From Schmidtea polychroa (Eukaryota), in assembly GCA_044892525.1 (NCBI GenBank), contig CM097887.1, positions 89,568,397-89,632,396 on the forward strand: 64,000 nucleotides of DNA, written 5' to 3'. Below, in pieces: positions 546 through 61,917 of the stretch. The position numbers were made by a program, and so were the translations under genes. The notes beneath the pieces were generated by a model. It searched no databases. It had not been told where the DNA came from and saw only the letters and a list, made by a program, of their open reading frames with translations. The first letter of the stretch is position 1; every line of letters starts with the position of its first letter.

Positions 546-2209
546 TGCCATAATATACCCAAATGCCTGATATAGTGCTATGAATGATGTTCTGAAATCT
601 TAAAATACAAAATTTTCCAAATATATTTAAACAGTAATTCTCTCCAGAATCCTGATTAGAAGAAAAACAATGGATGAATAAAGTTTAGTTTTTGGTCACT
701 GACCAAACCTCGTCGCGTTAAAAGAACTTACCTGATTCTTCGAAGCAGATTTTATTGAAATAAAATTTGATTTAATCTATCACTTTTCCGATCACAACTT
801 ATTTGATTTAGTGTTGACTGAAGTGAAAAAAACATTATCAGAATTACTCATAGCAAAAGATAAAAAATAAAATGTGAAATTTTATTTAATCAACATTAAT
901 CAACGACATAAAATTTGAATTTAAAAAAAAGGTTCAGGAATAAATCAGACGGGGGGAAAGGTCATGGGTTATAAGTAATTTATCAGAATACGTTTAGAAA
1001 AGGTCGAACAGCAAGGGAATGAAATAAAACTGGAAATCGGTAATTAATTAATTAAGGAAAATTCGAGTTTGATAAACGACGAAAAAAATGCAAAAAACGG
1101 GAAATCCAAAAACCATTAACAAGACAATATGATTAACGGGAAGACATCGAAAAAGATTATTATAGAGAAGATGCGATAATTACGATAGTGTAATTAATTA
1201 TATTGCTATACGAAGAAAGCATGAAAGAAAGCCGCAGAGGAAGGACTGTCAAACAGAGTCTATCATTTGAGAATCATCAAAAGAATAGTTATACCACTAT
1301 AAAATGCAAGTCGAAATAGAAACCACTGACATATACTTCAGATAGGGGCGAAGAAATCGAGAATGGGATTTAGGGAGATATATCGAATTTTTGTTAGTAG
1401 GACAAACGAAGGATTGGAAAAAGTAAATAGACCAATTACGGTCGAATCAGGATCAAATTATTGAATGTGACTATTGTATTAAAGTGCAAGGAATCCAACA
1501 GTCACAACGGGACTCTTCAAGTAGTCATAACATATATATTATTTCTTGCTATAACAATTTGGGTATGTAATTTGTGATATATATACAAATATACTTTGGA
1601 AGTGTTGAGTCTAATTTTTTAGAACACGAGGAGTCATAATCACCCATTAGTATTAACTATTCAATTAAAACCCAACATTATTTTAATTTTCCAAGTTTAA
1701 GTTTAACTAAAGATCAGTTTTGTTTTAATAATAAAATATTGGGGAAATTTTTTTAATTATTATTATATTATTATAAAAATAAGCGTTTATTCGTTCTAAC
1801 TGACCAAAATCCATATTTAAAAATAATTCGATTAGTTTAAAATTGTGGGGTCAATATTCAGTGGCTTCAATAAAAAAATAGATGATTTTCTTTAATATGT
1901 TTTATATATTTTTGTTCAAATATATTGGAATTATTTAATTTGTTTTAATCTATTCAAAATAAATCCTTTCATAAAAACTAAAGAAAATATTTTATTTTAA
2001 AATATTTTTGAAAAATTAAATATATCGAGCAATAAAATGTTTTTTTTCATCTTCTTAATAAAACATTAAATATTTCAATATCTTGGAGTTAATTCCTTGA
2101 AAGAAATGGGATTTTTCCAATCTTGTGCTTCCTCTAAAAATTATTGATTTAAGTTAATTGTTTTAAATTTATTATATATCATATAAAAATAAAATAAAAT
2201 GACTTTCCT

Positions 2210-3943: not shown

Positions 3944-3975
3944 CTTTAAAGAGTAGCTTCTTTTAAGTAAAAATA

Positions 3976-6900
3976 TTAAAGAAGTATGGTGAAAGTTAGG
4001 ATCAGATTATCATAATGACCTATTTCTGTAAATATAAAATTACAAAAACAACTAACCATCAACATCCCATTTAGAAGTAGGAATTGTATCATTGGGGTCC
4101 TGATTGTAGTTAATTTTCCAGAGACCTTTCGACAAGTAACAACGAACAATTTTTCCATCGTATTTTTCTTTCTCATATGAGGTTAAATACTTGATTTTTG
4201 TAAATGGCATAGAGGCTCCGTAAGCATACAGCAAACCAATCCATTTTTTATTTTTTCTGTTGTATAAATTATTGCTAAAAATACACATAAATAAATTAAC
4301 TGATTAATAACTGCCTTAAGTTTAAATTTGATATATCTGTAAAATGTAGGCATCCAAATATAAATGGTTGCTCTACCGAGAAATGTGTATGAAAAACTTC
4401 TATATGGATAGAATATTAATCCCGTCATTTCGTGTGGGATAGTTTTCTTAAGTTCAATCCAGGTCTATAAAATCTCAATGTTAATATTTAAAAAAATAAT
4501 TAATAAACAATTATAAATCTATTTAACACTAGATTTACGGGTAAAATAGCCGCAAAAATAGGTATACCTAATTCGATAAACGAAATGAAGGAGCGGGTAG
4601 AAACGAGTAATTAATATTTACCTATATTTCATGACATATCTAAAAACCAACATATGTATTCAAAAAATAATAAATCAGTATTATATATATGTAGCAATAG
4701 AATTTAATTGATATGAAATTTGAAACCCGTCAAATTGACGGGTTTCGTAAATCTAGTGTTAAAATAGTTACAAAATTCTAAATTTAAAAAATTTCAATAT
4801 TAGGGATCGAGTTTTATCATCTGGAGGAAAGTGAAAATTATCTACTGAAAAGAATAAAAAATCTTCACTTTCTCTAAATCGAACAAAGTTGCTTGATTAT
4901 CGGTTAAATTGATTATTGGTGGATTGATTATTGGTTATTTGGTTGATTTATTATTGGTTAGTTGGTTATTTGTTAGTTGATTATCGGTTAATTGATTATT
5001 GGTTAGTTGATTATTGGTTGATTGATTATTGGTTAGTTGGTTATTTGTTAGTTGGTTATCGGTTAATTGATTATTGGTTGATTGATTATTGGTTATTTGG
5101 TTGATTGATTATTGGTTGATTGATTATTGGTTAGTTGGTTATTTGTTAGTTGGTTATTGGTTAATTGATTATTTGATTGTATGGAATTTACTAGTTTGTT
5201 TAATAAGTGAAATCATGAAGAACAGTAGATGGATGGGGTACCCCTAGAGCAAGACTCCAATGGATAGTACCCCCTCCCGCCCTGGAGAAATTTTTTTAAA
5301 TATAGGTCAGGGTCAAATATGTAGGTCATTAGAATTTATTGAACGAATTTTTACAGAACTTGGACAGTTCACCATTATCATAACAAGTAGACATTGCACG
5401 TCTATCAGTCAAAAATTCAAATATCCTTATATGATTTGCAATATGTAAAATTCTTTCTTCCAGACTGACCAATGCCTATTCGGCGAGAACGATAAAAAAC
5501 TGTTGTTTCAGCTTCAATTTTCCATCTGCATGTTCATAGTCGACTGTGTTTTGGTGTGCCTGACACGTTTACTTTCAATCTCTATGGGAACGTGCATAGC
5601 TTCTGCAATTTCCTTAGCATCTCTTTCAGCATCTTAACTCCCAACGTGTGTTAGCCAAAGGTTTCAAAGTAGAATTTTTTAGGTGTCTTTTCAGGATATC
5701 CTAACGTTGAACAGAAGATGTGAATATCGTGTATAATTGTTACAGCGTTCCGAAGAAGGAAAGAGACTCCAGTAAAGATTTGGCAACGTCACAGACAATA
5801 AGGTTGATTGAATGGGTGACACCAGGATTAAAAAGGGCTTTTCTGTTCAACTTCAGCAGCCATGCTTGTATTTCGGAACAATTTTCCCTCATATTGGCTC
5901 CATTATCGCAACACTGAGCTCGAATATCTTTAAGGGACAATTGCAATGAGTTTGTTAGATTGTGGTAAATGCTTGAATAAATCCCTGCCCAGTAGTATCC
6001 TTCACACTCAGTAATCCTGTAAAATGCTGATTAACATAACATAGCGTTTGCATTCCATATGTCTCAGGAATACAGAAAGCTACTCTTGATGGCTTGTATC
6101 TGGTGTACAATTCATTATTACCGCAATGTACTTCGATTTTTTTAACTTATCAGAGATAACTGTTATGACTCTGTATAACTTTGCAAACATGAAAATTTAT
6201 GAACGATGCAAATTGAGATATTGGTGTATAATAAGGTGACCAGACATCCCGCTTTTGGCGGGACAGTCCCGATTTTTCACGATTTATCCCGCGTCAAAAT
6301 GAATAAAAAATATGTCAAGGAATGAAATATTATACAATTTTTTATATTTATAAATTGTACTTATGTAAAAATCAAAAAATATTACCATATTATTTATATT
6401 CTATTTGAACATTTTTGTTGATACCCCCTTCCTTCAAAGTTGTCCCGCTTTGCCCATCTAAAAATTTGGTCACCTTAGTGTATAAGCAAATTATGTAAAT
6501 TAGTATTGTATTTATTTAGTAAAATTAGAAATAAATATAACATAATATTGAAAGACGGCAAAAAGGTGGAAATAATTCAATACGAATTCAATAAAATTCT
6601 AGTATTATGTATTATAGTGGGCGTCGTTTCACCTGGGACAAACCATTTTTAGCATCATTCCCATATGTTCCCTATTTTTGTCAGCTTATTTGATAATTGA
6701 ACAATTTTCTAATTTTTTTAATACAAATCTATATTTTTCAAGCTAATCGAAATAAAATCAATCATGTTTCAAATGTGGATCCCACGCTGCACTGATGGCA
6801 ATTTAAAAATGACCCTGCCTAGATTTAAAAAAAAACCCAACCAAATATTCTGATCTAACAGTTAAATTTTGAATAATTCAGAAGACTATTATATTTATTA

Positions 6901-9900
6901 GAGTTTGAAGACTATAAATCAGTAATATATCGATGTTTGTTGATACTCACGAATTTTCGGCACTGTCTTTTTCAAGTGAATTCACTTAAAAAAAGCAATA
7001 CCGAAAATTCGTGAGTATCAACAAACATCGATATATTACTTATTTATAGTCTTCAAACTCTAATAAATTCAATGGAAAAAATATTTTGTGGTGAAATTGG
7101 AAGAAATAAAAGGTCTTATAATAAGACTATTATATGTTTTGAAAATTTACTTTTTACTTGCAATATCCTAATGATTTCTCCCTAAAATCTAAGACCTATG
7201 TCCTGAAAAAGTTGTTATATGATCTTCATTCAGTGAATAATTTAGTTTATGAATATTAAAAATTATGTATATGTTACATGGGAGCATTATAATTTTAAAA
7301 AGGCTTAGGTGGAGCATGACAAAAAAAATGATAGAGAAACACTATTATACAACATGGTAACACATAAGTTCATAAAGAAGAGTTTAGAATTTGATATGAC
7401 CAAAATGGAATGACGCACACTGTAAATAAAGAAAATAAAACTTTACCTTAAAAAGATCGTTGCTTTCAGATATTGTTTTCATCATAATATCAAACGGTCC
7501 ACGAGGAATTTGTGAGTCTATTTTTTCCTTCCTAACATCCATAATAAATTCCTGAATCATATCTAATCGTCTTGAATAGGACTCTTGATATATACGAGAC
7601 CCGCTAAGGGCATAAATATCTGATATTAAAAATACATAATATTTTTTGGAAGCGATAGTTTCAGCAACCAATTCCTAAAAATATTTTTCATAAAAATAAT
7701 GAAAGAAAAACTAATATTACATTTATATTAACTTATTACTGGTGACCGTCAAAATGTCTGCGTTAAAACGGGGTTTGTATATTATTATATAAAATTATTA
7801 GAAAAAACAATTATTTCAGTCATTAATAAATGTGGTTATAAAGACATCACATACAGTGGTTATAGGCATACAAAATATACAATTAAAAAATGTTACTGTT
7901 ACTTTTCATTATATTATATCAGAATAAATCGTATCATAGGTTGTTATAACATGATATTAAATGCAAGTATCTAATATATAAAGATGAAAGTTTGTTTGTT
8001 TGTTACCCATAAAATTCCCCACCGTTAGACCTAGGGTACTGAAATTGTGCATGTGACAATCATTTGACTCGGGACAGGTCATAGGCTATTAATGATCAGC
8101 AAGATATCCTATTAATGAGTGACCAACATATTTTTGAAATAAATTAACAAACACAATCTCTGATCCAATCATATTGTAACAGAAATCATATTTTTCAAAT
8201 TAATTATTTTTTTTATTAATTTTTTGACAACTTTACAATCACCTGTACCTCATGTTCTTTCCGGTATATTTGCCAATTTTAAAAGTCACTCGTGGATTTT
8301 ATCCTCTTTTAGATAACGTGTAAAAATTACTAATTGAACAGACAACTTAATATCATTTTTTTCATTTATGCAAATTGAGAAAGTCACAACTATTAATATC
8401 CATGTGAAGTTGATCTAAAATATTTACACTCATTTTTGAAATCCTTTCTTTCTGCTTAGCTGCAATTCTTGAATTCTTTGTAAAATTGTATTTGTATTGT
8501 TAAAATCTTGAAACAAACTGGAATGGAAGAAGCTTTTAACATAACCGCTTTTAAGAATAATCCACCAAAAAATGGTTTTTTGATTGTTTGACCATCAATT
8601 GTGATATTTCAAAACTGGCCTCAGTTACATTGCTTGAAATTTTTACGAATTAGAATAATAAGTTTGATTGATTCCCAGTAGTCTTTAACCGCCGAGAAAT
8701 TATTATTTCCTTTCAGTTATATTTTTATCAGCAATTTCCTTATGATTAGTTTCAAAATGTCTCTTAATAAAAGATTTCCGACATGCAATTATTCCAGATC
8801 ACAAACCACGACTTTTATCTTTATATTTATTAAAGCCATAATCAAGAGTCAACGATGGTAAAAAACTTCGCACATCCTGTAATTTTTATTTTTTCTTTGG
8901 TAACATTTCAATGGAGCAAATATTTTATAAAATAACAAAATCAATATTGACTTTTTTACATTTGCATTTCTCGATGTTGATCTTTACTAAGTGCCAGTGT
9001 TAGGCATTTATCACCTAATTTCTGATAAATTTCAGAATTTTTATTTTACAAAATATAAATATATAAATTCATGTCGATGAACTTAATATAATTGCTAGTT
9101 TGAACAATGTTTAAACTAACATATTTAAACAAGTGAATTAATCTTTAAATTATTAAAATATTAGAAATTAGAAAGAATTAAAATTGGAATATTATTAGAG
9201 ATATTTTTATAAGTAACTGTTTTTAGGATGAAATTAAAGATATTTTTTTCAGAAACTAAACACATGACTAAAAATTTTGTATGTGATAATGGTTTATTGA
9301 TATGCCCGTCTTTCCATCTTTCTGTACATTTTTTATTCAAATTCGGTTTTATCCATACTGGGTCACCAGCAGAATATTTTTCATCGATTATTATCTTTTT
9401 TTTTGTAGCTTGGCAGATTCAGTTTTCGATTATATCTAAATATGGCTCTAGATGGACATATATTATTGTTGTTTGGCGTATTATTGTACACAGCTTCTTT
9501 GATCGTTCCTGAGGACCTAGCTACTAGCGATTTGATTGTCCGAAGGCTGCGTTCAATGATCCCGTTTCCCGCTGGGAGGTTCACTGTTCTAAATAACAAC
9601 TCAACATTCCATTTATCTGCTAATTCTTGAAATGTTCTAGATCTAAAAGACATGAAATTATTTAATAATATTTCACTTGGAGCTCCTCTTTCATATAGCA
9701 CTTCATTTAAGGCATTTTATATCTCTTCTACCTTTTCTTTCTTAATTTTCTTCCAGATTGCATCTCGATGGCCTACAATAAATAATTGTCAAATATTTAT
9801 CTTTAGCGAATTTAGCTACATCAATTGCTAAACGGCACCAATTTTCATCACAGCTTAGTTCACCTTTTTCCCGTGTCACTGGCGCTGGGTCAATTGATAG

Positions 9901-12900
9901 GCATTGATTACAACTTGCAATTATTTCCGAGATCTCATTATCCACATTTAGTAGCCCCGCGTCCAATGCTAAGAACATGGCAATTCTTGTGAATTTCAAA
10001 TAACACATCTTTCGAGATTTTTGATTGCCTATTGCTGCGACTTTTTTAATAATCATCCAGTTGGCTGGTACTCTCGTTAATACATCAGCCTTGTTATTAT
10101 CTGCAGATACAAACTCAATATTCACTTTAAGTTCATACTCAATCGCTAGATCTTTTAAAAGTTCCAGCATCCGTCGTATCAACAACTCTGAATTTGCTTT
10201 TGTATGTATTTTTCTGTCGCTCTATAATATGCTGTTAACCCAACACACAACTGATTTACTATCGGATTTAATTTTGATAGACTTAAGATTCCATAAATTA
10301 ATACCCTTCACAATCGCTTCTAATTCCACTAAATTAATGTGTCTTGAATCATCAGGTTTTCGCAAACAACACGCATCTTCAACCAGTGAACCTTCCATTT
10401 CTAATACAATTCCAATAGCGATGGCACCAAATTATACCTGTCTGATTGCTGGGAACACTCCAAATACCTGACGATGGATCTCTTTCATTCACTTTTTTTT
10501 AACTTTAGGTTCATCTACGAATATATCGTCTATGTATGAACTTGTGCTATTGATTAATTCATTGTTCGTCAATACTTTATTCACAATCTCTGTCATCATC
10601 GTTGGTGCGATATTCAATCCAAATCGCATTCTCATAAGCACATATCTCTTCCCATTAACCATACAAGATTGGTATCGCCGACATGCTTTTATCCACATTT
10701 GCATATATGCATCAGATAAATCTAACATTGCAAATTCTTTACTAAAACATCTCCATGATCGTAATTTTTCAGAGCAGATTTCTGCATCCCCACTATATAC
10801 ATCAATATATTTATTGATACTCCTAAAGTCGAATACTGGACGCAGTTTCACTTTATTTGACTGAATTATACCATAAATAGGTACTGATCCGATCGGTTTG
10901 CTCATTGTTTTCTCGTAGTAATGAACTAGATAGCTCTTAGATATCCAAGAATTCAATATACGCATCATCTCCTGATCTTTACTACAATTATCATAAAAGT
11001 TCGAATTTATATTAGGTAGAAATTTCGGCGGCTCTGACTTCTAATCCCATTTGACAATCCATTTCTCGTTTTCAAATCTCGCAGAGAAATTTTCCTTCAA
11101 TATTTCTGACATACTACTACTAGAGCACGCTACATGACAAGGTGCTTCTTCGCTGCCGAATGTGGATTCTTTATTCAATCGAACTCCACCAAACCTATTA
11201 ATAAAATTCACTCCTAAAATTACATCATAATTGGATACTAATTTCGCGTATATTAAACAGTCAATATTAAATAACTTATCTCCAACCAATATATCAACTT
11301 TACTTCTATCAGCATATATTATTGAACCATCAAGTCGCAGTCATAGATTTTGTGGATTTCCTTTTACTATATTGGTAGTGCTTCCCAAATTAACTAAACA
11401 TGGTTTTACATCACCATTTACTAGGAGTCTCATATATTCACAATTCTTGGGCCACACTCGACTCCAACTTTCCCGACTTGCAAAACCTTGAAATATGTCC
11501 CATAATACCGCATTTTGTACAACTTACGTTGCGTCTTTCTGGACAGTATCTTACCACATGATTATCAGTATTGCATATATAGCATTTTTGATTGGCTTTC
11601 CTTCCACTATCTGATCTTGGTACAACTACTGCAACAGTTCCATTGTCATAAAATTGATGACTTGCGATTTTCTTTGCTTGAGCGACTAACTCATTCATCG
11701 TTGACGCTGTTGACATCTTTAGTCAATTTGACAAATGACTTGGTAAGCTATTTACAAAAAATCGGGTTAGTAGATCACCTAAACATTCCAACAGTGACCT
11801 TATTTTATTTACATGAACATCCAATTTATCACCCATTAAAAACTTTTTCTGTAAATGTTTTGTAAAGGCTTCTTGCTCGCTTATATCGAAAGTTTTTCCT
11901 TCTTCAGCATTCCGAAATCCATTGTCGTGTTGCTTTTCTTTAACTGTTTAAAGACTGCATACGATTGCCTTTCAAGTAAAAATGACATTACACTCATGAC
12001 ATTTTTCACATTCTTGGCTTCCAAAATAATTTCGAGTTTCTCCAACCATTCTTCCACATCTGTATTTTTGCCATCGAATTTTCCAACATTTTCAATTATA
12101 ATCTTGTTGATTTCCATTGCCCGGATAGCTTAAGACTAAACACGTTTTTTGAAATTCTATTTTACAACATTTTTATAATATTTAAACAACATTAATTGTT
12201 TGATATTACATTATTCCTACAACTATTTTTTATCTTAATTTAACTTTAAGTTTAAAATTTAATTTTATAATAATATTTCACAAATTATTATCACTTACCC
12301 CGTCAATAATAGTATCAATTAAAAATTTCCCTTTATGGTGAGGATGAGGAAAATTAAGATTTTCCACTTTAAAATACCTATTTTGTTCATCAATCATGTA
12401 TACGTGATTTTCATTTACGATAAACATTAAATATCGTTTCCCATTTGTTCTCCAGGTATGGTAGTATTGATTCGACATGAAATGTTTGTAAACTTTCCTT
12501 GTCACTAGTTTATATTTATGTCCAACAAATCCGTGCCTATTCAAAATTAAATTGTAAGAACAAAAACAATCATTTATGGGAAAAATATTAAAAGTATGAT
12601 GAAAAAATAATATGAAAAGTCTATCATTAATTAAAATTTTATATAAAAATATAGTAATTAAATATATCTAAATTAATTTTTTCAATGAAAATTTATCCTA
12701 ACCACTTAAGCATCTTGAACCAGACCATCTCGCTCGACTTATGTATTTCATTATGCACTTAGACGAGTAACTCACGCCGAAATATGTTCTGATTTTATCT
12801 CGAGCAAGAATTTAGAATTCAATGGGTTTAATTGCACGAAGTGTGCTTCAGGCGTGTTCGTTCACGCTTCTTTCGTTATTACTGTATATTTTCACGTAGT

Positions 12901-15900
12901 ATAATGTGAGTGTACGGTATTTACGTAACATTTAATAATTTTCCGGGTGACATAGAAAGATTGGAAAAAAATTGCAGCTTTTAGCAATATTGGTAAACCA
13001 TAGCTTCAAGGCCAATCTCAGACATCAGTGGAAGGACTGGATGACTGAAGGCGCGGGTATGCGACGCGCAACTTATGCACAAATGGGTGAGTGGATCAGT
13101 AAAGCATTGGATAATATCAGCATTAGGATAATAACATAAAATATTTGATATTAATATTATTTTAATTTACGTAAATATAATTTATAATTTGAATATTGGA
13201 CTCAGTTTTGAATAATTATTTAAATTTTTGACAAAAAATTACATTGTTGTTTGAAGTACATTTTGAAGTGCTTCTCTCAATTTGAATAGATTTTTTTCGT
13301 CTTTTATGTTCACTAGAAATTCCGGTGTTTCTACTCCTATTTTAGGTTTGATTTCTAGTTTACACTCCGGCTCACAACTTTTGTCATCAATTCGCCTTTT
13401 CTTTAATGATCCCATTGCAACTGAATCTTTCAACAGTGCCGAAGATCGTTTATTACCAATAACTGGTGAGTGTTCGAGTATAGGTCTTGAAATATCCTGA
13501 GTTTCATCTTGCCTATCCGTTAAAGATTGAGCTTGACATTTATCCTCCTCTTCTACCTCTATAATGAAAGTAACAATAAAACTATAACTCAATAAATTAC
13601 AATTTAATAGATNNNNNNNNNNNNNNNNNNNNNNNNNNNNNNNNNNNNNNNNNNNNNNNNNNNNNNNNNNNNNNNNNNNNNNNNNNNNNNNNNNNNNNNN
13701 NNNNNNNNNNNNNNNNNNNNNNNNNNNNNNNNNNNNNNNNNNNNNNNNNNNNNNNNNNNNNNNNNNNNNNNNNNNNNNNNNNNNNNNNNNNNNNNNNNNN
13801 NNNNNNNNNNNNNNNNNNNNNNNATATACCATCAAAATTAATAGACTGTGGATCTTTTGGAGTATCTTCTCGTTTTTCTCTTGATTTATCTTCCTCTTGA
13901 TCTGTGCGATCCGTTAAAATTTGAGCCTGGCATTCTTTCTCATCTTCTACCTCTATAATAAAATTAACTATGAAAATATAACTCAATAAATTACAATTTA
14001 AGACATTACATAAAAAATAATTATTAATATTATTTACTATCATTATTATGAGATTTTGAATTTTTAAATGTTAAATCTCAAAAATGTTAAAAGATAAATA
14101 TTTAAAAAATTAAATAGTATATTTAAACCAAATATATTTTAAGAAATTGTGTTAATTATCAGTCTACCATCATAATCAATGTCAAAAGTTATATACAGAA
14201 ACAATAATTATGTATTAGTAATGATTTAATGAACTAATTAAATAATCTCAATAAATTCATTGCTGATTGAATGCTAATTGTAGGGAGTTGTGATTTACCT
14301 TGTGATTTATCACCAATGCATCGCATACAATTCTTTTCCACTTATTATAAAGGTTTTAAGATTTTAAAATCTTTCAAGTCAGTTGCCCTTTTACACATTT
14401 TCCTATGCTCAATAATATGACTAACACTTTTCGATCGGCTGTATTCTTGAAGCTTTTTAGGAAATTAGTAAATCTATTCAATGTATACGGCATTGAACCC
14501 ATTACATGAAAACTTATAAACTAGATCAGACACTAAATTTATTGCGGTTTGAGATTTATTCCTAAACATATTTATTATTATTACAAATTAGTGAAAATTT
14601 AAAATAAGTAACTGTTGAAATGCTGAAACTTCTGTATTTTAACGAGTGGTAAAAGTTCGGTAGTCCTAGCGTCAGCTGCATGGAGATTGCGCATTTTTAA
14701 TAGTTTCTATTTAAATCTAATAAAGAATTTAATAATTTTCAGAACCAATTTAAAATGGTAAAGAACACCACAAAACTGCATTTGTTAAGAATTAGTTTAC
14801 AGTAAAAGAAAAAATAGCCATTATTAAGGAGACCAAAACAAATTCTATAAGATCGGTTGGTAAAAAGCACAATATTCCCGAGTTAAATATTAGACGTTGG
14901 ATTAAGCAAGAAATAAACTTGAAATCAATGATTTCAAATTCGGACGTAAAAATCAGAACAAGAAAAAGATTAGGTGGGGGTAAAAAGGCCCAATTTGATG
15001 AAGTGGAGCAAGAACCTTGCCAGCTTGTCATCAATCGTGACGAAAAAGGATTGACAGTAAAAATATTGTTTTGAAGGCAAAATCTCTCCGCGACAAATCT
15101 ATCAAAATATTGAAGATAAAGACAAAAAGGAAGGATTGATTTGCAAACGAGAAGAGCTTTTAAAGTTTAAAGCATCAGATTCGTGGTGCTATAATTTTAA
15201 AAAGAGACGCACTTGATGTCACGTGACCAGACAGGGTGCCGTAAACTTTTAGAGAATTTTAAAGAAATAACTTCCGATTTTATTATTGATGTTCGGGAAA
15301 TAATAATAAAATATAAAATTTAGCCTGAGAATATAATGAATATTGACCAAATTCCCCGAATGTTCGAATATGAGCCAAAAGGTACTATCACTATAAGAAG
15401 AGCCAAGGAAGTGTTCATGAAAAAAGCTTCAACTTCACACAAAAAATTCACATTCACTCGAACAATAAATGCTTCAAAACATTTCATTAACATGCATGTC
15501 CTATTTTCTAAATTAAAGGTAAAAACTGATAGATGGTTTCTCTATAGACACAAATTGCACTGTTATGTGGTCAGATGTAACTTTGAAAACATATTTTAAT
15601 AATGTAATTCTTAAGAGACCCCAAACTGCATTATTAAAACAACACATGCTTCTGATTCTAGATTCGTATCCAGTACATTTGAAAGTCATAAATGAAATTA
15701 AAGAGAAATTTGAGGAACAGTATAACATTCATTTTAAGATTGCACATCCCAATTTCACTGATCTACTTCAATCAATAGATTTTGGGCTGGGAAGATCATT
15801 TCAAACTTTCTACACTGAGAAGTACGACTATTACATTACAAGAGCATTGGATGATTTTAAATTAAAGACTAAAATGGGAAATATTAAAATGGCTTCTTAT

Positions 15901-25100: not shown

Positions 25101-28100
25101 ATTCTCTATCTTCCTTGCAAACTATTTCTTTCTTTCTTGTTTGTTTTTTTTCATATTTGAATTGTAAAGAACCTAAATAAATAATAAATGTAAAAATTCA
25201 TTTCGCTTAAAAAATATCAACTTTCAGGAGGAAGAGTAAATTCCCATTCTGGAGGATTTGGATAATGAATTGGTAAATTCGGTTGATGTAGGTTTAGCAA
25301 ATATTTCAAAAAAACTGGATTGTAAATTCCGGGAGGACGAGATTTAGCAAATAATTCTAAAGCCTCATTAAGCCTAATTGAATTAATTATAAATAAATTT
25401 CTAATGGATTAGAACTTACGGAATTCCACGTTGCGTTACCAGGTAATTTACTATCATAAATCCAGTCAAGTTGTAGCCATGAATACAATGAACAGCTGAA
25501 ATAAAACATAAAGTTGTTTCTTTAAAAGTATATTACAAATTTTAAAGAATTAAAAAAATTTACCAACTTACCGATTTTTCCCTCTTTATCCAATTCTATA
25601 TTTTTATTAACTATTTTGGTAAATGCTGTGATTTGTTTAGAAGTTGGCAAAGCTTCAACTCTAAAAATTATTTATATATTTATTTATTTTTATAATTATT
25701 GGTCAATACCGATTAAGTTTAAAATTTTTAATTTCAATTTTATGCTAAATCAAAAATTTTAAATATTTTTGATTTTAACTTTTGTTTAATTACTTCATAT
25801 ATTAATAGTTAATAATGGTGAAGGAGATTGTAATTTGAAAATCATTGTTTAATGTATTTGATTAATGTTAAGAAAGAAACTTTGAAAGTTGCTTGTTTCC
25901 AATTTATTTTTCTTTATTTGAATTTAATGGAATCAGGGAATGATGAAATGCCAATAAAAGAATTAAATAATGATTGTTACATGTATATTACCAAGGGAGT
26001 TTTAAATATTTGCTGCGATTACCATTCATTCAAGATAACATTAGAAGATGCGGCAAGCGTAAAAAGATTAGGACTCCCTGAACCAACAATTATAAGTAAC
26101 ACTGATACATTTCAAATTGTAATTCCACCGTATGTTGATTGCATTATGAATAATGTAATTAGAATGAAGTTAACGTACAATTGTTTACAAGATTCAGTTT
26201 TCACATTTACTGATGATTTATACATAAAAAAGCTTTAAGGTTTATTCAACTATTTAACAATTAATTGCACCCATATTTTCATATCTGTTGAACTGAATGA
26301 AAATGTCATTAAATTCAGTCTCATTGAAAACATTAAAGAAGTTATTTTTGATAAAAACTTGGTCAACACATTTGGATTACAAAAACAAATATATAATGAC
26401 TAACAATTTGTTGGAATTCGTAAAGGAAAAATATTTAATCACCATCAACAAACGTTCATCTATAGCGATATTATTGATCCGATAAATGTTGGTGATTCAC
26501 TGGCCCCTCTTCTGAAAGCGGTGTGGATTAAGAAATATGAGCAATATGAAGTTGTGTAAATACAAAAAGAAAATCCTATGTATTTACCAGTTGGCAGAAC
26601 ATGTATAAAAAATATAGAAATTAATATACGTGATGATGGCGGAAATTTAATCCGAATTGCAAACGATTCAAAAACACACGTAACTTTACAGGTAGAAAAA
26701 ACAAGATTTCTAATCCCGATATAGTTTCTCTTTATTCCAATAGTCAAACTGGTGGCGAATTACCTTATTTTGTTGGCAAACAATAATAACAATAATAATG
26801 AAAAAATATTACCATCTTTAAAATCCAATGCCATATCTGAATTCAAACAGGCATTACCAGATATAATTTCTTCATTACCAAATGTAATCGAATCAAATGA
26901 AGCATCGGAATCTGAAGAGTCTGAACCACAGCCTAAGCAAAGAAAACATCGAAGGTATATAAACAAACGAATGACAGGACGTGGAACTATATTCGAAAAA
27001 TGATTTGTGGAAAAACGGAATTATGTATTTTTGATCGACCGACTCCTCAGGCGGTTATAGAAAATGCGACATTTGAAGACGTATTCCCATTTAATTCAAT
27101 TGTTGATAATAAAAGCGATATTGAATTCAAGTTAACTGGTTCTCATACTGAATATCTCGATTTGAATGATACATTACTCTACATTAAATTAAAGGTTACA
27201 AATAATAATGGAAAGAAATTACCGGTTACTTAAGATACAAAAGCTTATAATTACTTGTTCCATACACTTTTTAGTGATGTTATTGTTGGACTCAATAATC
27301 AAAAGATTGAAGGTGGAAACAGAAGATATACACAAAAAGCTTAAATTGAAACTATTTTAAATTATAATGGAGATAGTAAAAACATTTGTCTGGCTCCTAT
27401 GGGTTATATTCCATCTGATAAGGAAAGAACAGCATTAATTGCCGGTTCTAAATTAGTTTCCCTATGTTCTTCATTGTAAATAGGTTTTATGGATCAACCA
27501 AAATATTTACTTCTAGGAGTTAATGTTAATGTAACACTGAAAAGAAACCCATCATCATTCAGTATACATTCACTAACTGATGAACCAAAGATAAAGGTAT
27601 TGAACGCAAAATTAATGATTCGCAAAGTTCAAGTTGAACCATCAGTTTTAGCAGGGCATCAAATAGAGTTAAATTCTAAAAATGCTATATATCCAATTAG
27701 AAGTAAAGAAACTGTCGACTTTACAATCAGTAAAGGTTCATCGTCATTTTACAAGGAACAATTATTTATTGATAAAAGATTACCAAATTTCGTTTTAGTG
27801 GCATTTCAAACTGAATCTCAATTTAAGGGAACATATAAGAAATCCAGCTCAGTCTTTAAACATTTGGATATTACATCAATCACTTTAGCCAAAAATAGTG
27901 ACTATCGAGAAACATACACAAAACTTTGACACAAATGATTATACTACAACGTATATGCAAAGTATTGTGAGAAATCTGGGGTATTTGGATAAAACGTGAA
28001 CTGTGGGATTACACTTGAAGATTTTAAAGATAAATATTCTTTACATTTGTTTTGTCTCCAGATTTTGATTTGAATCAAAGTCAATTACCACAACAAGGAA

Positions 28101-34100: not shown

Positions 34101-35026
34101 ATCAAATCGGTATATCTTTCGTCAAGAACTGTCTTCATTGGAAAAAATAGATCTAAATAAAGTCTATCATAAAATATTTCATAAATACTTTTTCTGTCTG
34201 TGTTCTATGCATTTCTAGTAATCTAATATTAGATTTGACACAATACTCTTTTTGCAATTGTGTGTATTTAATAATCCGGATTAAATAACATCTTTTTAAA
34301 ATAAAAACAACTATAAACAGAAAGAAAAGTCCTTAATAAATTCCGTTTGCTTTTATTAAATAAAAGTTTTGACAGGCTGGGAACCTCACAAATATAAAAT
34401 AACTACAGGTATTGTTTGAACAGTCTATTAGATTTTCTCAGAAATTCTAGTCGTCGTCCCCATCGGCATGCAGATAAACGTTTTATCCTGATATTACATT
34501 AATCAAATGCATGTTTTTATTGCTTTATAGCGAATCATTTAGGATAGCGCATCAGTGCAGCAAATGATATCAGATAATATTTTTTAACATTATTGTTTGA
34601 TAATTTTAAATAAATATGACGCCTTTATCACGGCGCCCCACAATATCACCTATACTGCCTGTTTTTTGGGCCGGCTTTAATTATGATTCATACGTTATCG
34701 TTTCACAAGATGGTGGAATTATGAATCATACTATATTAATTTTTTTTGGTTTTCTGAGTAAGTCACCTAAAAATACACAAACTTTTAATTAACGATTAAG
34801 GCCCTCCATTTGAATTTTTACTCCAATCGTATTTTTTGGACGAAAAAGATTTTCCGGTTTGAAAGATTAACATCATTTTTATATATTTATATGTATTTTA
34901 TATAAAAACTATTTTAATAAAAATATTTAAATATGCAAAATTTAGGAAACATTTATATATACCCGCTATTATATATCCTCTTCTGGGTGACTGGATCCAT
35001 CCTCTGGGAACTCTGTAAGACGACAT
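3976..35026 (-). CDS. Paralog A: catalytically degenerate mRNA capping enzyme-like protein (pseudo-triphosphatase + RD/RS-repeat linker + pseudo-guanylyltransferase/OB fold), 14 exons, about 913 aa
   Basis: Hand-spliced GT-AG exons with consistent phases: 35026-34963, 34152-34049, 34003-33906, 25660-25572, 25495-25420, 25373-25222, 25172-24333, 13952-13830, 13558-13243, 12536-12299, 7674-7447, 4464-4301, 4256-4057, 4025-3976 (2742 nt, no internal stop). Peptides: MSSYRVPRGWIQSPRRG, DLFFPMKT, IVLVIDL, VHCIHGYNLTGF, FAKSRPPGIY, PNPPEW, HGFVG..WRTNGKRYLM, IDGELV, FLISDI, HEMTGLIF, WIGLLYAYG. The join between the TPase and GTase halves (24333->13952) and the last exon are inferred, not transcript-proven. 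Confidence 0.8.
4527..4758. mobile_element. TTAA-flanked MITE (piggyBac-like)
   Basis: TIR cactagatttacg / cgtaaatctagtg, with TTAA on both sides. Confidence 0.8.
4895..5175. repeat. 15-bp minisatellite (TTATTGGTTRRTTGR)
   Basis: About 18 degenerate units, with occasional 16-nt variants. Confidence 0.9.
5300..6231 (-). pseudogene. Decayed hAT (Tip100/ZMYM1-like) transposase
   Basis: DCTPDTSHQE, CDNGANM, THSINLIVCDVAKS..FFGTL; many stops and frameshifts. Confidence 0.8.
6232..6477. mobile_element. hAT-Tip100-type MITE
   Basis: TIR taaggtgaccaga / tttggtcacctta, with a perfect 8-bp TSD GTGTATAA. Confidence 0.9.
6901..7060. mobile_element. Palindromic MITE (GAGTTTGAAGAC family)
   Basis: Near-perfect inverted repeat of about 65 bp. 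Related copies occur at about 23417-23548, 24090-24160 and 59940-60012. Confidence 0.8.
7970..8130 (+). mobile_element. Possible Helitron-like 5' end
   Basis: atctaatatataaagatgaaagtttgtttgtttgtt resembles invertebrate non-autonomous Helitron 5' termini. No 3' hairpin/CTAG was confirmed. Confidence 0.4.
8200..9000 (-). pseudogene. Decayed hAT (GTF2IRD2/Charlie-like) transposase fragment
   Basis: Remnants read KRHFETNH, KKPFFGGLFLKAVML and LLKLANIPERT*G, with many stops. Confidence 0.55.
9230..12130 (-). mobile_element. Decayed Ty3/Gypsy-type LTR retrotransposon inside an intron of paralog A
   Basis: Order is gag (11881-12117; CCHC knuckles CYICNTDNHVVRYC and CTKCGIMGHISRFC), protease-like region, RT (YIDDI, 10489-10968), RNaseH (NKADVLTR), integrase (GNGIIERSLRTIK). 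Frameshifted; LTRs not resolved. Confidence 0.85.
12900..13140 (+). pseudogene. pogo/Tigger DDE_1 transposase fragment
   Basis: LQLLAILVNHSFKANLRHQWKDWMTEG..RRATYAQMGEWI. Confidence 0.7.
14660..16590 (+). mobile_element. Decayed pogo/Tigger-like DNA transposon
   Basis: Imperfect TIRs containing tggagattgcgc / gcgcaatctcca. CENP-B-like HTH (FKASDSW) and DDE_1 pieces (NIDQIP, LILDSYPVHL, LQSIDFG); disrupted. Confidence 0.8.
16656..16754. mobile_element. hAT-Charlie-type MITE
   Basis: TIR gagtgtttcccaaa / tttgggaaacgccg, with a perfect TSD GTCTAGAC. Confidence 0.85.
19790..20310. repeat. Compound microsatellite and tandem repeat block
   Basis: (AGT)n, (GATGTC)n and (GTGGTC/GTGGTT)n, followed by 3-4 units of about 50 bp (gtggtcagttagt..acaatgtgtgtatgac). 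Confidence 0.85.
22005..22197. repeat. (AAT)n tracts flanking an about 85-bp dispersed repeat
   Basis: The insert gcgacatgttgaatgtgagcag..cccttagggggtcaaaatatcttgtcggataaac also occurs at about 20697-20790, 42740-42785 and inverted at about 17845. Confidence 0.8.
23550..24050 (+). pseudogene. hAT transposase C-terminal (hATC) fragment
   Basis: EIFPNVVVAL*IIISMPVSVASGERSFSKLKLIKSYLRSTIAQDR. Confidence 0.85.
24333..25172 (-). repeat. Coding tandem repeat exon (EDRSRDR/DDRSRNR units; Arg/Asp/Ser-rich) of paralog A
   Basis: ORF 24310..25101 extends upstream in frame to a TAG acceptor at 25173. It contains recurrent GATCTATCTC/TCTTGA units with higher-order blocks. Confidence 0.85.
25930..26720 (+). 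pseudogene. Polinton minor capsid (penton) protein, disrupted
   Basis: YSDIIDPINVGDSLAPLLKAV..MYLPVGRTCIKNIEINIRDDGG..VTL, a typical penton C-terminus. Confidence 0.75.
26752..27003 (+). CDS. Polinton small core-like protein (basic C-terminus, GRG motif)
   Basis: KQRKHRRYINKRMTGRGTIF; it overlaps the capsid gene start, as in Polinton layouts. Confidence 0.45.
   Translation: MANYLILLANNNNNNNEKILPSLKSNAISEFKQALPDIISSLPNVIESNEASESEESEPQPKQRKHRRYINKRMTGRGTIFEK
27000..28215 (+). pseudogene. Polinton major capsid protein, several premature stops
   Basis: IEFKLTGSHTEYLDLNDTLLYIK, HTLFSDVIV.LN, DQPKYLLLGVNVNVTLKR, LPNFVLVAF. Confidence 0.85.
28315..28563 (+). pseudogene. Adenain-like (C5) maturation protease, truncated
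   Basis: GVFPLD..IIVNTQSSNLRGEHWIAIY..FDPMG. The catalytic Cys region is missing. Confidence 0.8.
29016..32126 (+). pseudogene. Protein-primed family B DNA polymerase (pPolB), frameshifted
   Basis: DHDHFSG, FHNLRGYDLH, KLDVFLLADYF, YIDINNLYGWALSQKLP, KLLNNSLYGKT, WDTDS, KAKGV, DDKR. Confidence 0.92.
33180..33345. repeat. G-run/T-run/A-run low-complexity block, probable Polinton terminus
   Basis: Repeated AAAAGTAGGGGGG(G)TCTTTTTAAAA units ending in ..actacctact. Confidence 0.45.
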
Positions 35027-39918: not shown

Positions 39919-42900
39919 CTAACTGTGCTGGACATAATTAATAGCTCTATACACATGATCAATTGTCACCGGGTTCCCTATGCTCTCGAGGACCGCTAAA
40001 AAAGGTATTGAGTCAATAATACGGAAATTATTCACTTACATTTGGCAGTTGAAATATGATTCGGTTTCGATTTATCTGTTCTTTCTCTAATGATTTCCCA
40101 CTGCAAAGTGGTTGTGTTTAAAACACATTCGACAATCTTATTGTTGAATTTGTTTCGCAAATCTTTTTTGATGAAATCGATTTTACCGAAAAACATATGT
40201 TCTCCCGAAACAAACAGTTTCCCTACAAATTTCGGCACAATACTAGACACGAGGATAGAAAATTTGGTTGAATTTGTTATTTTTATGAATAATAAATAAA
40301 ATTTACTCGTTGCCTTTTTCATATTCGCATTTCAGTAGGAAATCGATCGAATTCAGTTCTGGTGGTTTCCATTTCAAAATGAACGGACAAGTTCCGGGTT
40401 CATAAAAGTCATCCGGTCCGCAAGGTTGGAATATCAATCCGTCCATTTCATGGCATAATTGTTTCCGGAATTTCCCATTCCAGATTTCATGGGTCTTTTC
40501 GATTGGCCAGAAATCTTTTATTCGAATTCCAAAAGATTCGTGTTTACGCATTTCTGGTGTCACGAATTTGCTCCTGGTATCGATAATGCATTTCTTGATT
40601 GTGTTAAACCGTTTGCTGAACACCTCCTTTCCAACATATTCCCCATCGATCGTCATAATATCATAGATTAGGAACCTGGGAAATTTGAGTCCTTCATAGG
40701 TGTCAATAACCATTTCACCGTCGACAAGAGTGTTTGTATAATGTTCGGTTTTGGTTTTGGGGAAATTAATATTCTCTACTTTATAAACGCAATTGTCTCT
40801 GTCAAACATATAAACAAGATCTTTATCAGCTATCAGCATTAAATATCGAGTTCCATCGGCCTTCCAACTGACCATATATTTCTTTTCTGTTAACAGTTTC
40901 AAGTTTTGATTTGTCATCGATACTGGTTGGCTACCGACGAATTCATATTTCGATACTGACATCAGATCACGCACCTTTACTTGCACCTCTTCTATCACTG
41001 CCGTATCCATGACAACTGAAACTTTACTTACACCTTCCATAAACGCAGCTTTTTTGGGAGCAATAAAAGGTTTTCTTGACTTTTTTCTCGGAAGTTTTAC
41101 TTTCGACTTAATATTTTCAGAGCTGTTAGTACTGCCTGAATTATCGGAATCTAAATCACTGTTACTAGCCAAGTCTTCAGTTTGGTCGGGAAAGCACGAC
41201 TCATCTTCACCTTCACAGTCATCTAATTATGTTTAGGAAATAGAATTAAAAGTACTTTTGGAAATGATAAAACATTATTGATTAAATGTTAAAATCAATT
41301 TTTATAAAAAAGTTATTTGTGAAAATCTCTAAATAATGTGACATTTACAGATGTTATGGAAAAGTATAAAAAATTTAATATACGAAAATTCATTTCCTGT
41401 GTGAAAAATTTCGAATTTTAATATAATTAATCTTCATTTTTAAGCTAAAAAAAATAGAATAAAAAGAAATGATGATCAAGAATTATAGACTGCTTGGGGT
41501 GTCACAAAAAATTAAGAAAGGATGTACTAAATGCTTCAAAGGCATTCACAATAAATGCAGTTAATTATATTTGTTTATAATTGTAATTTTTTGAAATATT
41601 GAATCATTTTTGAATTTTTGTATGAAATTCTTAGGGTGACTGAAGGGTTACATCATATATTGCCTAATAACTCTGTAAAATTTTATTTATTTTTAATATT
41701 TATTGTCCCATATTTAATAAGACATCAGTGATTGGTAACGGGATATTGTCAATTATCACATCTCTAAATATTAACGCAACCTACTATTATATAATTCGAT
41801 TTTTTCGTTATAAAATATTTCAGAATTAAAATTACTTTAATTCAACTTAGCGATTTCAATTTTAGCATAATAATCTTTATTGTTCTTTTATCAATGTAAT
41901 TATCTACTGAATGATTCAAAATTTGCACAATCAATTTTTTATCAAAACAAAAAAACTTAATTTAATTTACATTTAAATACATAATTGTCATGGTAATTGG
42001 GATATCGTTTTCAAAAGCCATATTAAATATAAAAGCTAACATTTTGTGTTGATAGTGAAAACAATTGATTTTCGATTGCTCAACAAATTATATTGTTAAA
42101 TTTATTTTTCTAAAAATAACGTAAAAGTTGCAAAAATTAAAATTTTTAGTTTTTTTTTATGGAATATTTATAGAATTGAAATATTTGATACTGTCTTAAT
42201 AATTGAAATCCTGTTGAATTTGATACATATGATAGCTATTTTGTTTTAACATTATGTATTAAAATTCTCAAAAAAAGCTTAAACAAAAACTATTGTATTA
42301 TTCGTTCAAAATACTGAGAATAAAATTTCAAAACAAATGACGTAATGACAAATAGAACCATAAATAAGTGCAGTGCGCAATAAGCTCAGTCGATATCTAT
42401 ACGCAATTAACGGTATGTGATGAGAAGCATATATAGTATGTTTATATTTTATTTTCTTATTATAGACTGTTTAACTTAAAAAATGTGAATGCGTTGACAA
42501 AATGTATATATATATATATAAATAATGGCTACTTTCCGGTTATCTCGATCTCATCAAAAAATGAACAGACACAAACACAACCAATTTTTGGTGCAATATT
42601 AGTAAAAAATTGGTTCAAATTCAATTAATTTGGTGCCTCATTAAAGGATAGCCATATTTTTAAAATTTCAAAATATACTTTTCGTTTTCAAATTTTTTTT
42701 TGTAGTGTTGAATACGACCAGTGCCAATTGTGACCTGTACCCTTAGGGGTCAGAATACTTTGTCGGATAAACTGAGACTATATGATTATTCTGTTGTTTA
42801 TTGCCTTTTTGATGAGGTCGAGATAACTGTAAAATAGCAAAAAATAATGTTGATTGATTGAAAAATATGTTTGAGAAGTGTGAATGCACTAATATTAATA

Positions 42901-44007
42901 GCAAAAAGTGTTTATTCGTGCCGATTTAATGTGGTTTTTATTTTTCTCAATTATATAATTAAGGTTTTCAGAAAGTTATATCAAAGAAGGAAACATTTTT
43001 CAAGTATTACTGATAAGTAGGAAGTTTATAGTAATAATTACAATGAATTTGTGTTAATTACTGTGGAAATTAATTTCAGTATTTGATCATTGCTTCAAGA
43101 CAACAATAATAATCAGAATTTATATAAAATTAAATTATTTTTGATTCAATATTTCCACTTAGACATTTACATTTTTATTTCCTAGAATAATTCAATTAAT
43201 AATAATTTTAAAATTTCTAAAACTATTAAAAGAAAAAAATACCCCAATTCGGTGTGTCTGGTGCTACTAACTCCTCCTCGTAATCATAGCGTTTCATCAA
43301 TTCATCTAAATAATCTTGCTTATAAATACCAGGAGGCCTGGAATTTGTAAACAACTGCACAGCTGTTTCGAGTCTTTTCAAATGTTATCAATTCCAATTT
43401 ACAAAAAAATAATAGAAAAATACTCAGCGTCGCATTTTTCAACCAGATAAGAAATAATCATAAAGCCAGTACGATTAAATCCATGAGTACAGTGCACTCC
43501 AACATAAGAACTATCATTATGATTGAAAAAATTTGTGCAGATATTTATAAATGATTCCACTTGTTCGATTGTAGGAGGACCATCGTGACTAAAGTGTTTT
43601 AGCATTTAAAATAATTTAGATATATATTAAATACCCTTCACAAGGTATTCTGGCAAACTGCTTCCGTCCTTCGAGTTGATCAGGTTTGTAATATCTCTCG
43701 GTTTTCGTTAAGTTAATAATTAAGCCTACTTTTTCCTAAAAATCTTTATTGCTTCAATTATTCCGTATTCTATAAATTTACTGTTTTTTTAGATATCAAT
43801 AAAGATTCCAGATTAAAAGAATTTGCAGGAGACATTTCATTGTCAAATTTGGAATCGAGTGGTGTTTTAAATGGAATAAACAGATCTTGAAAACGGGTAG
43901 TAAAAAAATTAGAAAGCAAAACTACTACCATTTACAACATTTCCTATTCTTGGGCAATTAAGCCACCTGGGTGGTAATCCCAAACGTTTACGTTTATGTT
44001 TATACAT
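39919..44007 (-). CDS. RNGTT: Paralog B: canonical bifunctional mRNA capping enzyme (RNA 5'-triphosphatase + guanylyltransferase), 8 exons, about 591 aa
   Basis: Exons 44007-43929, 43885-43782, 43735-43635, 43588-43424, 43373-43243, 41222-40307, 40242-40040, 39995-39919 (1776 nt, in frame). Motifs: PPRWLNCPR, HCTHGFNRTG, SWKADG (motif I), DGEMV (III), FLIYDI (IIIa), MDGLIF (IV), KWKP (V), RERTDK (VI), C-terminal SIGNPVT. Confidence 0.95.
42528..42838. mobile_element. MITE with about 35-bp imperfect TIRs
   Basis: gctactttccggttatctcgatctcatcaaaaaa / ttttttgatgaggtcgagataactgtaaaatagc. Confidence 0.65.
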
Positions 44008-60289: not shown

Positions 60290-61917
60290 TTCTTATCCTT
60301 TAATAAAGGAAGTTATTCGATAAAACTGCAAAAATAACCGCAGTGTGGATTTGTATGTTTCTATAATATAAATTGGTTTATTTCGTATCAAGTTTTTTTA
60401 TTATGGTAAAAACAATATAAATTAAATTTTATTTTAAATAAACTAACTATTTGCCACGGTTATGTAATTCGGGTTGGATTTGTCTGTTCGTTCTCTGATA
60501 ATTTCCCATGTCTTAGATATTTTGTTATAAATACATTCCACAATTTTGTTGTTATAAATTGTTCTATCTTCTTTTGAAACCCGCTCAATCTTACCGAATG
60601 GTTCATTTCGACCGCCGACAAAAAGATTTCCCTCATATCTCGATTCCTGACTAAACGGAATCAGTAGAAATAATCACTCAATTCGTTCAACTAGAATTAC
60701 CCCTCCCCTTTGACATATTCACATTTCAAATAGAAATCTATCGAATTATAATCTGGCGGTTTCCATTTCAAACTATGGTAGTTCTTTCCAGTAATATAGA
60801 CATCTTCCTTGTCTGCTGGTTGGAAAATCAATCCATCCATTTCGTGGAGGAGTTTATCACGAAAATCTCCGTCCCATATTCTTTCAGTTGTACTTAAGTC
60901 CCAAAAATCCTTCATTAAAACACCAAATGATTCTTGGCCTTTTACTTCTCTGGGTAAAAATTTTCTTTTCTCAATGATTTCTTTTTGAATTAAAAATAAT
61001 CTGTGCGAGAAATTAAAAATCCCGACATTGACCGAGTTTAAGCATACGATGTCAAAAATAAGAAATCTTGCGATTTGAACATCATCGACTACATCAATGA
61101 CCATTTCACCGTCCATGATCGTATTGGAATGATGCTCAGTTGGCGACATGGGAAAATACAGTTTCTCAACTCGAAATACAAAATTGTCTCGATCCAGCAT
61201 ATATATGAGATCACTTCCAATTACGATTAACATGTAACGGAATCCGTCGGGTTTCCAGCTAACCATATATTTTTTTTTAGTTAATAAGTTTGCATTTTTA
61301 TGAGTCATTGATACTGGTTGAGTGCCTGGGAAACCAAATCTAAATATTTCAATTTATTTTATAAAATTTAATTTAATTATAAATTTACTTATTAACATTC
61401 ATTAAATTTCGAACAAATTGGCGTATATTTTCCATCTCTGTGACATCCAATACTGGTAGAACTTTACTCACTCCTTCCATAAATCTCGGAACTTTTGGCT
61501 GATTAAATGCTGCTGCCGGTGGTTTTGAAGCTACCACTGGACACTTTCCTGAAACTGCATTAGTTACAGTCGAAATAATGTTCATGCCGATGTCTTCAAT
61601 TTTTTCTGTAATACTTGGCTTGGAAGCAACAATTTGTTTCTCAGGAGATGAAATCATTTCAGGTGTTGGTAGATTCGGACAAGAATCAACGACTTCTGTC
61701 TCTACAATAGAAGTTTCCATTCTGTCAACCTCACAGGCTTCTTCTAGCATTGGTTCTGGTTCTCTAGATTGTAAATCGCACATTTCTTGATCTTGGATTT
61801 CTTGTAACTTAGATGCTTTGGAAGTTTCTTTTGGTTGTGATGTAACTTTAATATCTTCCTTGTCTGCTTTTGGAGAAATTGGAATATAACTCAACGCTTC
61901 TTTCTCTACATTTCTGG
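60290..61917 (-). CDS. RNGTT: Paralog C: capping enzyme linker, guanylyltransferase and OB-fold exons (5' part not identified)
   Basis: Exons 61917-61389, 61339-60701, 60650-60448 and a tentative last exon starting at 60360. Motifs WKPDG, DGEMV, FLIFDI, MDGLIF, KWKP and RERTDK are intact. The OB exon is 203 nt, the same as in B. Confidence 0.88.

Follow-up and report, generated by a model that had tools for sequence, protein, structure and literature searches.

A transcribed, open paralog of the bifunctional capping enzyme in Schmidtea polychroa with predicted loss of catalysis and a rewritten polar surface

Animals possess a bifunctional capping enzyme, for which we take human RNGTT and mouse Mce1 (PDB 3S24, 3RTX and 8P4A) to be the closest described systems. 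The capping enzyme is normally encoded by a single, essential and slowly evolving gene. The lysine of its motif I forms a covalent enzyme-GMP adduct, and we know of no covalent nucleotidyltransferase that works without this residue. Basic residues of motifs V and VI hold the triphosphate and the RNA, as structural work on the Chlorella virus and mammalian enzymes has established. Here we describe a departure from this pattern in a 64,000-nt stretch of Schmidtea polychroa contig CM097887.1 (assembly GCA_044892525.1, positions 89,568,397 to 89,632,396), referred to below as the window. It is AT-rich eukaryotic DNA (GC about 0.25-0.35) from a 781-Mb assembly and carries three capping-enzyme genes, paralogs A, B and C, which form a tandem array in the same orientation on the minus strand. 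The paralogs beyond A and B are C and two intronless D copies located 28 Mb away. Paralog B, the subject of this report, extends from about 35026 to 2075, with its guanylyltransferase (GTase) and OB (oligonucleotide/oligosaccharide-binding) part at 12536-2075. We consider it somewhat probable that B, a transcribed, correctly spliced and open paralog of the bifunctional metazoan capping enzyme, encodes a folded, non-capping pseudoenzyme with a new surface and a non-canonical partner.

Paralog B has the same domain order as RNGTT/Mce1 (Cys-phosphatase-like triphosphatase, linker, nucleotidyltransferase (NTase) and OB domain, the last putative in B), the same ancestral intron positions and a common set of skeleton motifs (W-x-x-x-G-x-R-Y, DGE, LIxD, H-E-x-x-G-L-I-F, xWxP and I-x-x-C). 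It differs from them in lacking the nucleophilic lysine, 11 more of 19 essential residues, the P-loop arginine of the triphosphatase and the arginines of the pocket for the phosphoserine-5 carboxy-terminal domain (pSer5-CTD). A custom hidden Markov model (HMM) built from 70 canonical enzymes scored B at 153.5 bits overall. The two NTase parts reached 104.5 and 22.9 bits and the OB part 26.9 bits, compared with shuffle maxima of 6.9, 10.5 and 8.8 bits, respectively. Pfam profile PF01331 matched exon i of the GTase part with 57.7 bits (cut-off 29.6) and exon ii with 24 bits; the exon ii match spans profile positions 77-151, and the profile is covered contiguously. In the OB part, the aligned residues are GLLY, KIVxC, a tryptophan and NP(I/V). 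By these scores, homology to the capping enzyme appears to run over the whole NTase and OB length, far beyond chance. B belongs to the RNGTT family by descent, yet fails its catalytic and CTD-docking features and is better not classed as a capping enzyme.

Paralogs A to D were aligned with the 70 canonical enzymes, and alignment columns were numbered by the human protein. As the essential set (n = 19, columns 94-100% conserved) we used the lysine, aspartate and glycine of motif I and 16 further positions, which we take to be those of the mouse Mce1 alanine scan (Sawaya & Shuman 2003). Twelve of the 19 are changed in B (K294R, D296N, R315E, Y362S, D438T, K458I, K460M, D468K, R530D, D532N, K533D and N537T) and seven are kept (G297, R299, D343, E345, D363, R380 and G439). 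All 19 are intact in A, and C and D keep them as well, save Y362F in C. Motif I reads RTNG in B vs KxDG in all 70 references and in A, C and D, and motif VI of B carries R528N beside its three essential changes. The P-loop of the B triphosphatase, HCIHGYNLTG, keeps the cysteine and has leucine in place of the arginine of HCxxGxxR(S/T); the corresponding sequence in A is HCTHGFNRTG. B is predicted to be unable to form the lysine-GMP adduct, and its GTase catalysis would surely be gone.

These changes include every motif replacement from A to B listed in the initial annotation (WKADG to WRTNG, MDGLIF to MTGLIF, KWKP to IWMP and RERTDK to NYNQDP), and each of these strings was found in the sequence. 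On the minus strand, the A motifs lie at 40852-40863 (WKADG), 40429-40443 ((M)DGLIF), 40363-40374 (KWKP) and 40071-40088 (RERTDK). Those of B lie at 12440-12451 plus the W (WRTNG), 4411-4425 (MTGLIF), 4348-4359 (IWMP) and 4094-4111 (NYNQDP). The motifs said to persist in B could also be confirmed, namely RYLM (12425-12436), FLISDI (7615-7632), GLLY (4226-4237), KIVRC (4139-4153) and DGELV, the last only after splicing.

The same annotation had proposed that catalysis was lost on purpose. The loss itself stands, with 12 of 19 essential residues changed including the lysine nucleophile, while the purpose finds no backing: catalytic residues were lost no more often than others, B keeping 7 of the 19 essential positions vs 29 of 56 other near-invariant ones (p = 0.30). 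Invariant polar residues outside the catalytic set were lost just as heavily (5/19 kept). Retention instead follows residue class. Among near-invariant positions, B keeps 27/42 that are apolar, Gly or Pro vs 10/35 that are polar or charged (Fisher p = 0.003), and 25/39 vs 5/19 when the catalytic set is removed (p = 0.011). Invariant Trp (3/3), Gly (5/6) and Pro (4/5) residues were spared, for which AT mutation bias offers no explanation. Retention of the near-invariant polar positions is 94-100% in A, C and D. Divergence in B is not uniform, in line with the earlier expectation that structural positions had been spared. What B preferentially keeps appears to be the skeleton of hydrophobic, Gly and Pro residues in the NTase and OB folds, and its polar surface is rewritten; the net charge is +15 for B vs +3 for A.

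In the human GTase, pSer5-CTD is bound by two pockets, CDS1 (R330, K331 and R386) and CDS2 (R358, K403 and R411), and the Tyr1 pockets and K294 itself also contribute to CTD binding (PMC8034621). In B, CDS1 has the changes R330P, K331H and R386E, and CDS2 has R358V, a gap at K403, and R411M. Paralog A keeps K331, K386, R358, R403 and R411 at the CTD pocket positions. Only the hydrophobic Tyr1-pocket residues change conservatively in B (F367L, V372I, L381L and F377Y). In motifs V and VI, the basic residues K458, K460, R528, R530 and K533 are all replaced. Since both the CTD pockets and these basic residues are replaced, the claim of the initial annotation that the binding surfaces were kept is unsupported. 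Given the catalytic and CTD-pocket losses, B would neither cap RNA nor reach RNA polymerase II in the canonical way.

The GTase/OB coding sequence of B consists of five segments on the minus strand (12536-12299, 7674-7447, 4464-4301, 4256-4057 and 2133-2075), and every border is AG/GT and in frame. The interval first annotated, 4057-12536, ends at exact exon borders, 12536 being the first base past an AG acceptor and 4057 the last base ahead of a GT donor. Exon i (12299..12536; acceptor ...gaatag/G, donor GACGGG/gtaagt, with the slash marking the border) encodes HGFVG...WRTNGKRYLM...IIDG with the motif I replacements Lys to Arg and Asp to Asn, and ends with the DG of motif III. Intron i/ii (7675..12298) lies in phase 0 at the ancestral DG/E position. 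DG closes exon i at 12299 and ELV opens exon ii at 7674, so that DGELV arises only by splicing at this canonical junction. Exon ii (7447..7674; acceptor ttttag/GAATTG, donor TTTAAG/gtaaag) encodes ELVAE...FLISDI...SRRL...LFK and comprises the motif III glutamate, a Tyr to Ser change in motif IIIa and the former CTD-docking helix. It is followed by intron ii/iii (4465..7446), 2982 nt long and also at an ancestral position, which ends CT..AC on the plus strand, corresponding to GT..AG on the minus strand.

Exon iii (4301..4464, minus strand) encodes TWIELKKTIPHEMTGLIF...IYIWMP...KFKLKAVIN, in which the motif IV aspartate has become threonine and both motif V lysines are lost; its donor TAATCA/gttaat at 4301 is predicted. 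Exon iv (4057..4256, minus strand), the putative OB domain, encodes KNKKWIGLLYAYG...KIVRCYLS...NYNQDPNDTIPTSKWDVD and has lost RxRxDK of motif VI; its acceptor ...caacag/A at 4256 is likewise predicted. The predicted intron between them has 44 nt and small introns locally have 47-64 nt, compared with which a 26-nt version (acceptor 4274) was rejected as too short. The last coding exon (2075..2133, minus strand; acceptor tttttag/AGGAAG) lies outside the interval first annotated. It encodes (E)EAQDWKNPISFKELTPRY and ends ...NPISFKELTPRY before a TGA stop at 2077-2075, and its NPISFKEL aligns with NPVTKE(M/I)L of canonical enzymes.

Two of these junctions were seen in RNA-type contigs, 7447 to 4464 and 4057 to 2133, in two runs of one sample. 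Contigs from four runs were mapped to 3900-7750; the junction of exons i and ii extends beyond this stretch. In contig X2 record 5, 7602-7447 is joined to 4464, skipping 2982 nt (GT..AG on the gene strand). Contig X1 record 2 carries the end of exon ii followed by exon iii down to 4313, where the contig ends; these two contigs prove the exon iii start at 4464. Contig X1 record 1 covers 4207-4057 and continues in a 51-nt loose end that matches 2104-2133 exactly and uniquely. Because this contig joins 4057 to 2133, the 3' end of B moves from 3976 to 2075, and a model with a 31-nt intron past 4057 and a stop at 3976 was rejected. The 781-Mb assembly has one copy of B exon ii, and none of its six PF01331 loci is a B retrocopy; within this assembly, an origin of the joined contigs from a retrocopy was therefore rejected.

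The 295 codons of the B GTase/OB part contain no stops, the other two frames 16 and 31. Among 20,000 shuffles the mean was 23.7 stops and none had zero, and the flanking intron has about 0.07 stops per codon. The upstream exons, from the MSSYRVPRGW… start through the triphosphatase to the linker, are open too. B is a real gene that is transcribed, spliced and maintained as an open reading frame (ORF). The open frame and the sparing of fold positions suggest that it has been kept by selection.

The origin of B could be followed in its introns. Three intron positions and phases are common to B and the gene of the hemichordate Saccoglossus (L008): before GFxG in phase 2, at DG/E in phase 0, and at K/L or K/T before motif IV in phase 0, which in Saccoglossus sits at VK/LVD. 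Paralog A is without all three and C without the last two, while the Lottia gene (L007) has a single intron and is uninformative on this point. Because these shared ancestral introns are absent from A, B would derive from DNA duplication of an intron-rich ancestor and not from today's A. The pattern also suggests that intron loss in the active copies A and C was cDNA-mediated.

B shares 29% identity with A; A, C and D share 47-60% with one another. The end branch of B has 7.37 substitutions per site vs a median of 0.3, about 25 times more. In a free quick maximum-likelihood (ML) tree, B came out at the root next to rotifer-type sequences. Constraining B to the local A/C/D clade gave a best tree that was better by 45 log-likelihood (lnL) units and had a p-AU of 0.96. 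We rejected the root placement, which was probably caused by long-branch attraction. The best reading is a lineage-specific origin of B followed by extreme acceleration.

These observations can be joined in one account, in which B would have arisen in this lineage when an ancestral, intron-rich capping-enzyme gene was duplicated at the DNA level, and would then have evolved about 25 times faster than its sister copies. It may now make a folded, non-catalytic and more basic protein that could serve as a binding or scaffold module, with a partner outside the canonical set of GTP, RNA 5' end and pSer5-CTD. Such a new partner is purely something that we infer. Several points weigh against a functional pseudoenzyme of this kind. 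The RNA support consists of a few contigs of low depth (about 5-6 by k-mers), from runs for which an RNA origin is a guess, and the junctions between exons i and ii and between exons iii and iv are predicted from sequence, unlike the other two. Fold retention is deduced from residue-class statistics. Divergence in the motif IV-V and OB parts is too high for exon-by-exon Pfam detection, PF03919 giving no detection on exon iv alone. A search with exon i against 1.84 billion representative proteins found no B ortholog, the best matches being 38-47% identical and canonical or unrelated degenerate paralogs.

Another explanation is that B is a dying gene, a transcribed and still-spliced unitary pseudogene. 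Relaxed constraint since the duplication would then have left a residual ORF with a functionless product. The extreme branch length and the undetectable ortholog are as expected for such a gene, as are the low contig depth and the huge introns laden with transposable elements (TEs) vs the compact A. Both catalytic domains are dead, and about half of the near-invariant positions are lost, catalytic ones no more than others. We nevertheless regard this as rather unlikely, since at 71% amino-acid divergence about 21-24 stops would be expected under neutrality where none is present, five of five exon borders retain frame and canonical sites, and substitutions spare the apolar, Gly and Pro skeleton, to which AT bias gives no protection. 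A model built on the initial annotation, a dead decoy with canonical surfaces for pSer5-CTD and the RNA 5' end that acts at RNA polymerase II as a competitor or regulator of the active enzyme, could draw on the kept fold skeleton, the basic protein, the conservative Tyr1-pocket changes and the retention of R299, D343, E345, D363 and R380. It appears improbable because the four arginines on which pSer5 binding depends in the human enzyme read P, E, V and M in B, K294, itself a contributor to CTD binding (PMC8034621), is Arg, and the five basic residues of motifs V and VI are all lost.

A further possibility is that B is still an enzyme that works through non-canonical residues, for example with a different nucleotidyl acceptor or on another substrate. 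The D-G-E of motif III, R299, R380, G297 and G439 persist, as does the triphosphatase cysteine, but the lysine nucleophile, the motif IV aspartate, both motif V lysines and the whole of motif VI are gone together, and we consider residual enzymatic activity very improbable. If the folded pseudoenzyme reading is taken one step further, B could be the first of a class of 'pseudo-capping enzymes', that is, a double-dead RNGTT paralog under selection whose re-surfaced basic NTase-OB module modulates 5'-end metabolism through a new partner, either RNA or protein. This is possible though doubtful, and spliced-leader or cytoplasmic recapping pathways are candidate processes, in a genome where active-looking GTase-only paralogs (C and the two D copies) have multiplied as well.

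B resembles pseudokinases and pseudophosphatases in that it is homologous to an active enzyme, lacks catalytic residues, keeps fold-determining residues and is expressed. In the paper collection searched, no description of a capping-enzyme pseudoenzyme or a planarian paralog was found. The database proteins closest in kind are UJR12745.1 of the rotifer Adineta vaga (P0124, WKPAG) and P0141, P0145, P0170 and P0183, paralogs from other animals that share with B the GTase fold, a degenerate motif I and a partial degeneration of motifs IV-VI. Unlike B, they keep the lysine and have no triphosphatase domain, and they are about 31-40% identical to B. They stood next to B only in the free quick tree, and are independent cases and not B orthologs. 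Altered forms of KxDG (KPAG, KSVG, KSSG, KANG, IADG, KAAG and SPDG) were seen in these five capping-enzyme homologs and in P0133, P0158, P0166, P0174 and P0182. Degenerate capping-enzyme paralogs may be recurrent in animals.

The capping family of this one genome comprises one canonical bifunctional enzyme, three active-looking GTase-only copies and one double-dead copy that is expressed and open. A functional B would stand for a new family of pseudoenzymes with its roots in a core RNA-processing enzyme, and would offer a natural experiment that separates the parts of the NTase-OB module needed for folding from those needed for binding GTP, RNA or CTD. If B is only decaying, it would be an ordinary by-product of tandem duplication.

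B and its paralogs A and C share strand and tandem array, and A, C and D fall with B in the same lineage-specific clade of the best tree. Paralog A (39919..44007, minus strand) has HCTHGFNRTG, WKADG, DGLIF, KWKP and RERTDK, has lost introns that B keeps, and encodes its GTase in one 917-nt exon and two small exons; a database protein (P0001) is 88% identical to it. D differs from B in being intronless and in having no triphosphatase domain. Paralog C (60448..61894, minus strand) has a GTase with WKPDG and intact DGLIF, KWKP and RERTDK; its essential residues are kept except for Y362F, and it also carries R411L. Its introns are 49-50 nt long and it has a long acidic, Ser-rich N-terminal ORF. 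Up to the window end, neither a triphosphatase domain nor an obvious last exon of C was found.

The two D copies (L002:1207-2382, plus strand, and L003:1183-2358, minus strand; G000:C3 at about 61.958 and 61.964 Mb) lie in inverted orientation about 6 kb apart. Each is intronless and GTase-only, encodes 392 aa with WKPDG and RERNDK, and is 86% identical to a database protein (P0002). Over the part read, the nearly identical copies differ by one residue; they resemble a pair of retrogenes. A locus at about 61.514 Mb of G000:C3 (L006:1429-1758, minus strand; NWKPDGTGYIML…VNGKIV, truncated after motif III) was examined as a possible further B-like copy and rejected, as it is a decayed fragment of D type.

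Upstream of its GTase part, B has a probable first coding exon at 34961..35026 (minus strand, exon end approximate) encoding MSSYRVPRGWIQSPRRGYIIAG, whose ORF aligns with MYKHKRKRLGLPPRWLNCPRIGNVVNG of A. The triphosphatase P-loop exon (25419..25532, minus strand) encodes AVHCIHGYNLTGF and was recognized by tblastn matches, its ORF and a weak DSPc match. The linker exon directly upstream of the GTase (13246..13560, minus strand) comprises an acidic stretch, KKRR and ...PEFLVNIKDEKNLFKLREALQNVLQTT(M), and gave no match in a Pfam search. Its phase-2 donor ACAAT/gtaatt pairs with exon i, at the intron position and phase found in C and Saccoglossus. The start of this exon and the end of the preceding intron occur twice in diverged form (…FIIEVEEEDKCQAQSLTDR… and …FIIEVEDEKECQAQILTDR…), at 13246-13560 and 13597-14043 on the minus strand, and the two versions flank an assembly gap (N run 13613-13823). 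The doubled exon start could be an exon duplication, a pair of alternative exons or an assembly effect.

The two larger introns within the GTase part contain repeats. Intron i/ii carries a decayed retroelement at about 9381-12117 (minus strand), in the same orientation as the gene, with a gag zinc knuckle, a reverse transcriptase (RT) and an integrase-like region in this order. Stops break it, and the RVT_1 and zf-CCHC matches lie on broken ORFs. No direct repeats of at least 60 nt resembling long terminal repeats (LTRs) were found within 7700-12300. Intron ii/iii includes a tandem-repeat array with open frames of WLIDYWLVGY-type repeats (4931-5247, plus strand). Three segments of the same intron (4545-4800, 6222-6480 and 6867-7124) are very deeply covered by X8 and X7 contigs with many variants; these are probably dispersed repeats or expressed pieces of transposable elements and not B transcripts.

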